DNA of 42,025 nucleotides from Intoshia linei (lineage: Eukaryota > Animalia > Orthonectida): assembly GCA_001642005.1 (NCBI GenBank), contig LWCA01000191.1:1-42025 (forward strand). The letters run 5' to 3'. This document shows positions 37,683 to 42,025 of the stretch, one piece after another; within the stretch, counting starts at the first letter, position 1, and every line of letters starts with the position of its first letter. The notes beneath the pieces were generated by a model. It had not been told where the DNA came from. It did no database searches and was given only the letters and a program-made list of their open reading frames with translations. The position numbers and the translations under genes were made by a program.

Positions 37683-40600
37683 TTACAAGTTAAATCGACT
37701 TAAACAAATCGATTCGCCATTTTCTAAATATTCTTCTCGAGTGACAAAAATTCGCTGCATGTTTTCACTGTTGCATAAATTTCGACCACCTAGCCAGGGA
37801 AATCCTATGGGACTAAAATAAGGTTAGAAATTGTTACGATTAGGTATTACTCTTCCGGAATCACAATATTTATATCGATATCACTGTCAACAATGGATCG
37901 TAAATCTTGGCGACTAATTTAATGTAAGTCAAATAAAATAACAACTTACAATCGACTAACAAATCCATCAAAGTTCATGTTTCCTCCAATCAATAGAATG
38001 TTGTCGTACATTGTATAAGCATCATCTATTTTACAAAATGAATAAATAATTCGGAAAATTTACAGTTAATAAATTCATCACGAAATGTTTCTCAAGCCGC
38101 CATACCCGAAAATTCAAATTAGAATACAAAAATACTATATGAACCACTTTTCTAATATAGATAAAAACAAACCTCCGTAAAATTTGTGGCAATTATCAAT
38201 TACATATTTAGTTGCCTCGACTATGCCCATTTGGTTTATTCCTATATCGGATGGATTAAATAACAATTCCGGTACTGTAAATCTTTCAACTCCTAACCGT
38301 ATGGACTAAACTTTAATTTAAAATGTAAATTAATCTTAAAACTTGATAATCTGTTTTATTTTTTAATCGTTCGTCGCTAATTCCATTTCTTATGAAACCA
38401 CGATTAGTATCAGCAAAATCAGGTAATATGTAATCTTGTATCAAGTCGGAATCTGGTAAATTTGATCTAAATAACAAATTAATAATTATTAACAATAAAA
38501 TCATTGTAAATCTGCAGTTCCTTAACTTTTCAATATTCGCGCATGCTCATAAATGATAACGGCGGTTCGCGAGCATTGTTAACAGGTCATATTTCTGTTT
38601 AATGTACAATATTTTATTCAAAAAATATTTGATATTATCAAAGAAAAAACAATATTAATGCAGATTTATTATTAGAGTACTCAACAAAAAAATTTAAAAT
38701 TTAATAAGGGTCAATCTTATCTTCATTTAAATAATTTTATCTTATTTATCGATTAACTAATTAAATCTTAATTCATTATGTGATCATCTTAATTTAAGAT
38801 GAACGATAAATATTAATTATTTAATTAAATTAAATAATCATACCATTTGCAACGATGGTATTTTAACTCTATATTATCATATATAAGTAATTTTCTTGCT
38901 AAGATTCTTGCAGGTGTACTGATTCTCAAGAATATACTTTTTAGTGTTCCATTTCTAAAAATAAGCATGCGAAGAGGGCTTGAGTAACGTAGATTAGACA
39001 GATACAATGTACTTTTTAGAAAATTTTCTAAATCATACATTTGATATCCAGAGGTTAATAAACTCATTTATAAGCACCTTAATGGTTGCCTAAAACAATA
39101 AACCGATTCGCCATCGACTCGTAGGCTATTGATCTATTTTAAGAATTGAAAAATAAAAAAAATTACGTGACACTCTTCATATCCCGATAAAAATCAGATG
39201 TGACATAACAAGAATCTTCTTTAAGTTGGTTAATAACATAAGTTTCATCCATGACATTGAGTTGTCTAAAAATGTTAATACAGTGGAAATTTGATTGTGA
39301 AAACACTTCATCGTAAAAACACTTGATAGTAACTAATGTAAATACAGCTAAATTGAAAAATGAACTTTATATTTTAAGACAATATAAAAACTTAATATTG
39401 TACTTTTGTAAAATTACTAACATTTGTAATATGTGAATTATATTTTACTTTTTTAAAAATTTTCATAAATCTATTTAAAATGTGCACTATTATAAATATC
39501 TATTTATCTGAGATATTATTTTCTAATTTAAATTGTTACATTATTAATATTGATTTTTTTAAAGTTAATATATTTTATTAGTTTTAATTGTCCTTGAAAC
39601 AGATTCGTCGTTATTCCTAATTTCAAAAATTAACTAGTTTTTACAACTAACAATTCACATTTTTATCAGTTTCATATATTAGATCATGTTTTCTTAACTG
39701 AGGGGTCGATAAAAATATTTCTAGAGTCGCGTCATTTTATTGAAAATTTTAAGTTACTTTAACTATGTGAAACATCTTTTTCAAACTTAACATACATAAA
39801 AATTCCCCTTAAACGTTGATCAAAAACATACCCTTAAACTTTGGTTAAATTCATCTGCCACCTGTCCATAGGATTTTCCGGAATCGATTTAAGTTTAATG
39901 ATGTTTATTTTATCAAAAATACTTATATATTTACGTTTCATAATTTCGTGTTTAAAGAATTCGCTATATTTACTTTATGACTTTTTCATTTTTAAAGTTG
40001 TCTTAATAATAAAAATTATTGCATAAATATATTTAGCTGATTGATATTTGCTGTACTTACAATCGAGATTCCACTGTAAAATTAAATCAATATAATACCC
40101 ATATGAGATGATTTCTTTAAGGTGATTTGTGAATAGTTTTCCTCCAATATTAATTCTCACTGTAAAATCTGATATACGCTTTCCTTGCATATAAGGTATA
40201 ATATGAGTAAATGAATATCCGGAATCAATAATTAAACAAGAATTATTCTGTGTTGAGCACAATTGTTTAATAAATCCAAAAAAAGGAGCTATAAAGATTA
40301 GAATGAAAATTTAAAATTAGACTTACTGACACATCGAAAAACACCAGCAAATTCGAATTCTTCAAAAAAAATTTCATCCATATCGCACTTGACAGAAATA
40401 AAATTGGCGATAGGTTCAGTGATACAAATCCTAGTGTCTTTATAATCAACATTCAATACATCAGATGAGAAGACACGTTCCCAAATGCGTTTTTGAACGT
40501 TTCCGTTGACAAGATATCCCTTAAAAGTTTAGTTAAAGTAAAGGAAAATACAGATGAATTAAATAATTCTTACTCTATCAAAGGGAACCATATAATACAG

Positions 40601-41147
40601 ACCAGACTTGTCATTACATTTTTCGGTTTCATCGGCAACAAATACACGGTTTTTTATGTTTTTCGCTTTAGTAATGCAATTTGGGATTAACCTAGGATGG
40701 AACAAATTATAATAAAATATAATAGATGGCATAAATAAACAATTAACAAAACTGTTAAAACAACAAATTTTATTGTGAAGGTTTAACAAAAACAATGTAT
40801 TCTCCTTTAATCGTCACCATTCCCATATAAGAAACGTTGATACCAATTTTTTCTGCAATTTCATCAGTGTAAATTTCAATAGCGTTTCGTAACACCATAT
40901 TAGAAAAACAGTCCATACAGGAAATTATACCGGCAAATTCTCTGGACAGCAATTTACCATTTTCTAATGGAACATTTGTTTTCACCGATACCTGTTTACC
41001 AAGTAGATTCTTTAAAAAATTAATTTTGTCAGTTTTATTCATTTTACATTTTTAAATAAAGTTTAAATAAAATTACATTGGTTTCAGCATGTGGGACCAA
41101 TTTACTTTCATGGTGTAGGCTCCATTATCCATTACAATGTATTTCAT
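37683..41147 (-). CDS. ACTR6: Actin-related protein 6 (SWR1/SRCAP subunit), ~10 exons
   Basis: MKYIVMDNGAYTMK..|LIPNC...GLYYMVPFDR|GYLVN..., IIDSGYSFTHIIPY, GGKLFTNHLKEIISY, QLNVMDETYVINQLKEDSCYV, DYILPDF, ERFTVPELLFNPSDIGINQMGI, VTREEYLENG...RFNL*. Confidence 0.92.
40770..41042 (-). CDS. Sm/LSm-fold protein (LSM6/SmF-like or NAA38-like), intronless, nested in ACTR6 intron 1 on the same strand
   Basis: Sm1 motif FLKNLLGKQVSVK...FAGIISCMDCFSNMVLRNAIE and Sm2 motif MGMVTIKGEYIVFV. Uninterrupted 90-aa ORF. Confidence 0.82.
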   Translation of the reverse strand: MNKTDKINFLKNLLGKQVSVKTNVPLENGKLLSREFAGIISCMDCFSNMVLRNAIEIYTDEIAEKIGINVSYMGMVTIKGEYIVFVKPSQ

Positions 41148-41289: not shown

Positions 41290-41508
41290 ATGTCAATATT
41301 TTCAACAATTTCTTTGTCGCGACAGGCTGTGGTTACGTCTTTGACATTTACAATTATAATGACAGCATATGTTCATAACCTTATGGATTATCAGAGTCGT
41401 GTAAATTTTTCATTTTTTTTTTTACATTTTTAGCAAGAAAAATTGTCTTTGCACAGGAAAATTCGTAAGAAGGACATGAAAATACCTGGATTAGGATTTA
41501 ATTGTTAA
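41290..41508 (+). CDS. Small protein resembling cytochrome c oxidase assembly factor PET117, 2 exons (41290-41400, 41434-41508)
   Basis: MSIFSTISLSRQAVVTSLTFTIIMTAYVHNLMDYQSR|QEKLSLHRKIRKKD...: a hydrophobic segment, then YVH and LH in PET117-like order. 33-nt GT-AG intron; divergent from ACTR6. Confidence 0.5.
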
Positions 41509-42025
41509 ATTAAATTTTATCATGTACAGTATTCTTTCGATAACTCGCCATTAATTTAAAATATAAAAGTTATAAACCATCTTTCAAAATTAGTTGCGAT
41601 TTTATGTACTTAAGTTTTAAATCACGTTGAAATTTAAAATGCTTCTAAATAATGCAGATGGATAAATCATTTATTTAAAAAAGAGAAATCTATATTATGC
41701 TTACAAAAAATTGTATTTATATTTATTCTATTTAGTAAACCCATTTTTTAATTCAAATGTAATTTTTAGAAAATATTGAATTCATTTCAGTTGTAAAAAT
41801 GAATTTTTTGATTAGATAGATTATAATTATTTTTTATTAGGCCGTTTCTTGTAACGCCCAAATGATTAAATTCACAGATAAATAGATGTAGATGACAAAA
41901 TAATATAATATATTGTTTAGAAATAGCCTTAAATTGACAACAGAAAAATTGGAAATATTTTAATTAGCATAAGTTTGGAGAGAAACGAATTACAATACTT
42001 AAATTTTAACATAGAATGTGATTCA

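Follow-up and report, generated by a model that had tools for sequence, protein, structure and literature searches.

An intronless Sm-fold gene nested within the short first intron of ARP6 in Intoshia linei

We show that one 460-nucleotide (nt) stretch of the Intoshia linei genome gives rise to two mature RNAs, one for actin-related protein 6 (ARP6) and one for a small protein of the Sm fold (LSm), the complete gene for the latter being enclosed, on the same minus strand, by the first intron of the former. The intron contains a poly(A) site that is in use, and the whole nested unit is spliced out of ARP6 messages. We consider it probable that the LSm gene is an independent, intronless gene nested in ARP6 intron 1, with a start of its own at or just past the host donor and a poly(A) site of its own. 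The DNA studied was contig LWCA01000191.1, taken as a window of 42,025 nt and described here in forward-strand coordinates, from a genome assembly of 41.6 Mb with 27% guanine plus cytosine (G+C).

The two genes are packed together with very little room between their signals. ARP6 exon 1 opens with an ATG at 41147, encodes a typical actin-related-protein N-terminus and ends in the letters CCA AT, which are followed by GTAATT; the intron closes with CCTAG at 40692, and the first G of exon 2 completes an ATG codon and leaves the frame open. Within this intron of 385 nt, the LSm transcription unit takes up about 313 nt, or four fifths (~81%), so that the LSm contigs come, at their furthest, to about 9 nt from the host donor, and 63 nt lie between the LSm poly(A) site and the host acceptor. 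A sequence-only reading of the same DNA had described this layout accurately: the in-frame joining of exons 1 and 2 across a GT-AG intron, the intact Sm-fold open reading frame (ORF) on the same strand (41042-40770), the lack of any AG in the 34 nt from the donor to the LSm ATG, the AATAAA (40774-40769) that overlaps the LSm stop and precedes a GU/U-rich stretch, the immediate stop (ATG TAA) of the exon 1 frame if the intron is retained, and an ATGTAA start-stop just upstream of the LSm ATG (41049-41044, within the LSm leader) are all borne out. Several of these details are weak when taken singly, given the AT-rich composition, at which the chance of zero AG in the gap is about 27% (0.27), AATAAA is expected roughly once per 290 nt, and ATGTAA is expected at about 0.03 sites in a leader of this length. 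The open frame together with its profile match, described below, is evidently not a product of chance, since a frame of 90 codons would arise with a probability of roughly 3e-4 per start. Positions 41077-41101 also hold an inverted repeat of 10 pairs, counting G-T pairs and read on the plus strand, which ends exactly at the last base of ARP6 exon 1; one of its arms contains CCAAT and the other ATTGG. We considered an RNA-structural switch at the ARP6 donor and rejected it, as exon 1 and the leader fold no better than shuffled sequences (z -0.8).

Evidence on transcripts comes from Logan contigs of three public runs (X1, X2 and X3) of one study, whose library type is not on record. We take the runs to be RNA, or complementary DNA (cDNA)-like, because they contain spliced GT..AG joints and non-templated poly(A) tails and because introns and intergenic DNA are hardly covered at all. 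The splice joint 41077/40691 (40689/41075 in the contig listing, cut +2) was found in X1, X2 and X3, and the LSm ORF is likewise represented in contigs of each. In X2, one contig (contig 9) spans 40755-41036 and carries, before 40755 on the plus strand, 21 T that are not genomic; the genome has no run of A at this position, and these letters are thus the poly(A) tail of a minus-strand RNA, added 12-14 nt past the AATAAA and close to the end at about 40750 that had been predicted from the sequence. This LSm contig is separate from the ARP6 contig of the same run (contig 8, 1043 nt), which passes unbroken through exons 5-4-3-2-1 and onward to 41400, and the mean depths of the two are 80 and 48. 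The LSm contig of X3 (contig 13, 40847-41067), made up wholly of genomic letters, is also separate, with a mean depth of 116 against 12 for the ARP6 contig (contig 12), which is likewise unbroken through the joint and extends as far as 41332. In X1, the assembly graph is split exactly at both ends of intron 1, and a short separate contig bears the spliced joint. LSm contigs exceed ARP6 contigs in depth by factors of about 1.2, 1.7 and 10 across the three runs, a comparison that cannot rank expression, since contig depth is a single figure per contig and a poor measure of it.

The pattern of contig breaks is informative because, in de Bruijn assembly, two paths with a 30-mer in common bring a contig to its end. 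Were exon 1 part of LSm mRNA, the path from exon 1 into the intron would be at least as strong as the path from exon 1 to exon 2, and the ARP6 contig would have to break at 41075. Such a break is found in X1 and in neither X2 nor X3, from which it follows that the bulk of LSm mRNA in the latter two runs is without the last 30 nt of exon 1. Breaks caused by repeats were considered and ruled out, as the LSm leader region is unique in the genome. The contigs place the LSm 5' end between about 41103 and 41043, with RNA reaching at least to 41067, 9 nt past the donor GT. Most LSm mRNA is without the ARP6 start codon and most likely without the donor as well. The 3' end of the LSm transcript is thus its own, as shown by the poly(A) tail at 40755, and its 5' end is probably so too, to judge from the X2 and X3 contigs that have no link to exon 1.

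Several points weigh against an independent LSm transcript. Contigs cannot map transcript ends, and the LSm contig of X2 halts inside the ORF, at 41036; all three runs, moreover, come from the one study, with its unrecorded library type, and no promoter element was identified for the LSm start. One X1 contig (40662-41104) runs continuously through 30 nt of exon 2, the entire intron and 28 nt of exon 1, and the X1 junction contig has a depth of 80 against 145 for the exons, a gap that leaves room for a sizeable unspliced fraction in that run. X1 also covers ARP6 intron 4, at a depth of 2.8, and the link between exon 1 and the intron may reflect low-level unspliced RNA or DNA, or a real class of intron-retaining transcripts. 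Finally, the involvement of U1 in the mechanism outlined below is carried over from other animals.

Two of the alternatives have the nested gene share its beginnings with ARP6. The sequence-only reading had proposed that ARP6 and LSm have a common start and a common exon 1, such that splicing yields ARP6 and retention of the intron followed by cleavage yields LSm, with the ratio set by splicing efficiency. All the signals that this would require are found in the correct order, polyadenylation does occur within the intron, the donor (AAT/GTAATT) is without a G at both -1 and +5, and the continuous X1 contig represents molecules that pass from exon 1 into the LSm region. The shared start and 5' exon themselves were not seen in X2 and X3, where the deeper LSm contigs have no connection with exon 1 and the ARP6 contigs cross the joint without a branch, so that LSm RNA bearing exon 1 cannot be the main form in these runs; in X3, the contig that contains exon 1 has one tenth of the LSm contig depth. 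The linking path in X1 is explicable by low-level unspliced RNA or DNA, considering the coverage of intron 4 in that run. The LSm ORF would also have to be translated behind an upstream open reading frame of 24 amino acids plus the start-stop, which would be inefficient. What the contigs indicate is the separate start inside the intron that the earlier reading had itself named as fatal to its switch, although the 5' end is not mapped exactly, and we regard this switch as quite unlikely. It is also possible, if rather unlikely, that the two genes are co-regulated by a single broad promoter region with a start cluster on either side of the donor, exon 1 acting as the LSm core promoter, so that the choice would lie in the start site and not in splicing. 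The LSm 5' end falls within about 10-35 nt of the donor, at a distance of about 80-100 nt from the ARP6 ATG. The sequence offers no space for a distinct promoter upstream, beyond ARP6 exon 1 and the ARP6 5' untranslated region, and each of the three runs shows expression of both genes; the spread in depth ratios speaks against tight co-regulation, as far as so poor a measure can.

The remaining alternatives deny the LSm gene either a function or a start of its own. A dead or accidental insertion, such as a retrocopy merely transcribed as part of the ARP6 intron, would account for an intronless ORF inside an intron with no orthologue found, but the frame of 90 codons is intact in AT-rich DNA and matches the Pfam LSM profile at full length, a parent copy is nowhere in the genome, the gene has its own used poly(A) site, and its contigs are at least as deep as those of the host exons, in contrast to the near-empty other introns of ARP6; this explanation is very improbable and already effectively refuted. 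Least credible of all is release of the LSm mRNA from a longer, operon-like precursor by spliced-leader trans-splicing, as the gap between the donor and the LSm ATG offers no AG acceptor and the X3 LSm contig is purely genomic to 41067, with no foreign leader letters. An independent nested gene thus remains the reading that we favor.

How two transcripts could be kept apart in so small a space can be outlined as follows. Transcription of ARP6 begins upstream; its RNA contains the donor, continues past the nested poly(A) site and loses the whole LSm gene on splicing. LSm transcripts probably start at or a few bases downstream of the donor, and they end at the AATAAA-directed site at 40755-40757, so that the position of the start relative to the donor would decide which protein is made. 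U1 small nuclear ribonucleoprotein (snRNP) bound at a 5' splice site suppresses nearby downstream poly(A) sites, a phenomenon known as telescripting from vertebrate and fly work. A donor-bearing transcript would bind U1 snRNP, have the nearby poly(A) site suppressed and then be spliced, and a transcript starting past the donor would have nothing to splice and would be cleaved and polyadenylated at 40755. ARP6 exon 1 would double as the LSm core promoter, and the stretch of 63 nt that leads from the LSm poly(A) site to exon 2 (40692-40754) would, judging from its position, serve both as the LSm poly(A) downstream element and as the branch point, pyrimidine tract and acceptor of the ARP6 intron. 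A fuller version of this scheme, in which the locus is a two-protein unit with one compact promoter region, the start position relative to the donor sets the outcome, and a minority of unspliced transcripts started upstream also end at the LSm site, appears unlikely on balance; if it were true, and if the orphan protein described below stands in for LSm1, the locus would tie an mRNA-decay factor to a chromatin-remodelling subunit. As for the origin of the arrangement, the intron without the nested unit (41067-40755) measures about 72 nt, which is consistent with an intronless gene having been inserted into a short intron of the ordinary kind, since this remainder would be close to the median intron of 57 bp in Intoshia linei (PMC6543705).

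The protein encoded by the nested gene matches the Pfam LSM profile (PF01423) with an E-value of 3.1e-11 and 43.2 bits, against a cut-off of 23.4, over profile positions 1-66 of 66, and is also recovered, with 40.7 bits, in a six-frame search of the genome, of which it is the only copy in the assembly. The genome search with this profile gave 19 exon hits, which apart from the nested gene make up 14 genes, several of them split by introns within the Sm domain: SmB, D1, D2, D3, E, F and G, and LSm2, 3, 4, 5, 6, 7 and 8, all highly conserved. Five of the 14 were confirmed against solved structures (listed in the table) and the other nine assigned by eye from sequence. We therefore rejected the nested protein as a core Sm or LSm2-8 orthologue: all 14 lie at other loci, and it scores at most 13 bits to any of them, LSm7 being the best. 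It is not among the core subunits of the spliceosome, and the feedback loop that had been suggested from the sequence, in which weak splicing would raise the level of a splicing factor, is for this reason without basis.

What the protein is instead is less easily said. Among solved structures, archaeal Sm1 is the best match (E 1e-3), followed by human LSm6 (0.022) and SmG (0.03), with Schizosaccharomyces pombe LSm1 at rank 21 (E 0.55), behind archaeal Sm, LSm6, SmG, SmF, LSm7 and LSm5; chains named Naa38 or Mak31 were not found among solved structures at E-values up to 10. A HMMER search for an orthologue in 1.84 billion representative proteins returned only the protein itself and three long, unrelated-looking proteins (E 3e-5 to 4e-4), a word-index search returned only the protein itself, and a look-up of contigs for the exact protein had no match on record. 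Canonical LSm1 was absent from the 19 Pfam LSM hits and from searches with the genome's own LSm8 and SmB, which were made exon by exon in a draft assembly, where absence is unprovable; searches with Pfam Mak10 (for the NAA38 partner Naa35) and PAT1 (for LSm1) gave no match in this genome nor in any control genome and so carry no weight. In an alignment with AF-Sm1, D44-C-F-S-N48 stands opposite D-I-H-M-N of the Sm1 motif and I-K79-G-E opposite I-R-G-D of the Sm2 motif, with Lys replacing Arg. We take the uridine-pocket roles seen in the structure of AF-Sm1 with RNA to correspond to F46, N48 and K79, and with Phe46, Asn48 and Lys79 at these positions the pocket looks RNA-competent. The ESM Atlas model of the protein has a predicted local distance difference test (pLDDT) score of 0.81 and a template modelling (TM) score of 0.76 to an LSM cluster, its clusters being only generic "LSM domain-containing" ones, and a single-sequence AlphaFold2 model was poor (pLDDT 45.6). 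The ORF ends 4 residues past the last strand, without a C-terminal extension of the LSm1 kind, and a further exon is impossible because the poly(A) site lies so close behind the AATAAA that overlaps the stop. We therefore describe the protein as an orphan, fast-evolving LSm, for which a lineage-specific or other identity is close to an even bet, a much-changed LSm1 is a serious possibility and an NAA38-like protein is rather unlikely. The apparently vacant LSm1 slot counts for LSm1, as do the D-x-F-small-N and G-E motifs if, as we assume, these are LSm1-like; the lack of any specific similarity, while every other Sm and LSm protein here is highly conserved, and the lack of a C-terminal tail count against it.

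Table 1. Features of the ARP6/LSm locus and its surroundings, with the Sm and LSm genes confirmed at other loci.
Feature	Position	Strand	Description and evidence
ARP6 exon 1, coding part	41077..41147	-	23 codons + 2 nt; transcript reaches further upstream; joined to 40691 in X1, X2 and X3 contigs
ARP6 intron 1	40692..41076	-	385 nt, GT..AG; whole LSm transcription unit inside; joint in three runs and splice dinucleotides
LSm minimum 5' leader	41043..41067	-	X3 contig 13 (40847-41067), no loose letters, unlinked to exon 1
LSm ORF	40770..41042	-	90 amino acids + stop, intronless; Pfam LSM match; contigs in X1, X2 and X3
AATAAA poly(A) signal	40769..40774	-	Overlaps LSm stop; 12-14 nt upstream of poly(A) addition site
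LSm cleavage/poly(A) addition site	40755..40757	-	X2 contig 9, 21 non-templated T before 40755 (plus strand)
U/GU-rich stretch	40692..40754	-	Sequence; putative dual role, from position
ARP6 exon 2	40574..40691	-	Contig joints, open frame
ARP6 exon 3	40327..40519	-	Contig joints, open frame
ARP6 exon 4	40099..40288	-	Contig joints; human ARP6 structure match
ARP6 exon 5	39167..39265	-	Contig joints, loose-end consensus placed in window
ARP6 exon 6 (next constitutive exon)	from 38466	-	RNA contigs
Small plus-strand gene	exons 41290-41400, 41434-41508	+	61-codon ORF; 33-nt GT..AG intron 41401-41433; joint in X2 contig 8
LSm6	elsewhere in genome		Solved-structure E 1.9e-17
SmG	elsewhere in genome		Solved-structure E 4.8e-6
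LSm7	elsewhere in genome		Solved-structure E 5.7e-27
SmF	elsewhere in genome		Solved-structure E 2.7e-12
LSm8	elsewhere in genome		Solved-structure E 1.1e-13

The host gene can be followed well beyond its first exon. The exon chain was taken from RNA contigs, with the frames checked to be open and the exons searched one by one, and exon 4 has human actin-related protein 6 as its best match among solved structures (E 1.2e-17), with ARP5 at 1.3e-4 and actin at about 1e-3. The introns measure 385, 54, 38, 833 and 700 nt, and the reading frame closes with an ARP6-like C-terminus. Contigs also cover pieces of two of the other introns. In intron 5 (39166-38467, minus strand), a segment of 282 nt (38844-39125) occurs in RNA contigs of X2 and X3, and in X2 it is joined to exon 5 across a 41-nt GT..AG intron (39166-39126); it meets a stop after 18 codons in the ARP6 frame, at a contig depth of 15 vs 48 for the main form, and would because of that stop yield a truncated ARP6 isoform or a target for decay. 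In intron 4 (40098-39266), X1 contigs at 39916-40033 continue into unlike sequence at 40027 and 40033, and one X1 joint, 39925/39965, is odd in having TA..GC ends; the piece may be a repeat or a mobile-element fragment expressed from elsewhere.

A small expressed gene (41290..41528, plus strand) is oriented head-to-head with ARP6, its ATG being 142 nt away from that of ARP6. Its product has a hydrophobic stretch, neither of its exons matches Pfam, and its stop (41506-41508) is followed by ATTAAA and, after 41528, by 24 non-templated A in X2 contig 8. Since this one contig joins the small gene to spliced ARP6 mRNA, the two 5' regions overlap or abut. Short introns observed in this genome are of 33-54 nt. 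Further along, an X1 contig at 41834-42003 has 12 differences in 170 nt, all other contigs being identical to the window, and could stem from a diverged allele, from a paralogous copy or from a related organism present in that sample.

With the probable start of the nested gene abutting the host donor and its putative poly(A) downstream element sharing sequence with the host acceptor region, ARP6 and LSm are among the tightest known host/nested pairs. The locus offers a small natural test case both for the means by which RNA polymerase II transcripts get past an efficient poly(A) site that closely follows a 5' splice site and for the extent to which genome compaction in a reduced parasite can make genes overlap. 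It draws attention, too, to an orphan Sm-fold protein in a genome in which canonical LSm1 was not found, and it warns annotators that models of ARP6 exon 1 and of the LSm gene can easily go wrong. On present evidence, it reveals no new regulatory principle.

Compared with the LSm/Sm family at large, the nested protein has a full-length Sm domain with a predicted N-terminal helix, the Sm1 and Sm2 motifs and the aromatic, Asn and basic pocket positions. It is unlike the eukaryotic paralogues in showing no specific similarity to any of them, whereas canonical orthologues from its own genome are recognized from single exons at E-values of 1e-6 to 1e-27, and it differs further in about 7 extra residues between strands 2 and 3, in a Lys for the Arg of the Sm2 motif and in a Ser for the usual Met or Leu before the Sm1 Asn. 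At the level of the locus, switches between splicing and intronic polyadenylation are known from the secreted and membrane forms of immunoglobulin mu and from the intronic poly(A) site of CstF-77/su(f). These systems are alike in having a functional poly(A) site in an intron of a longer gene, where splicing and cleavage compete; their products, however, share a promoter and 5' exons, whereas the LSm mRNA is mostly without host exon 1 and encodes an unrelated protein. The parallel with U1 telescripting is one of behavior, as it would explain both how ARP6 transcripts pass an efficient AATAAA about 300 nt past the donor and why donor-less transcripts use it.

The closest likeness is to the host/nested gene pairs of other animals, in which a whole gene lies within one intron, both genes are expressed, and the gene inside has no introns and uses a poly(A) site of its own. 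Intron-nested genes are common; in mouse and human they are often found in the first intron of the host, and the numbers in same and opposite orientation are "broadly similar" (PMC11694760), so that the premise of the sequence-only reading that nested genes are commonly antisense holds only weakly. Nested genes in tandem with their hosts provoke host intron retention and premature polyadenylation (PMC3192792). What differs is scale: known hosts use their longest introns, usually of kilobases, and here an intron of 385 nt is mostly filled. We conclude that ARP6 and LSm form a real and unusually compact case of a known gene-within-gene arrangement, in which only the degree of compaction stands out.

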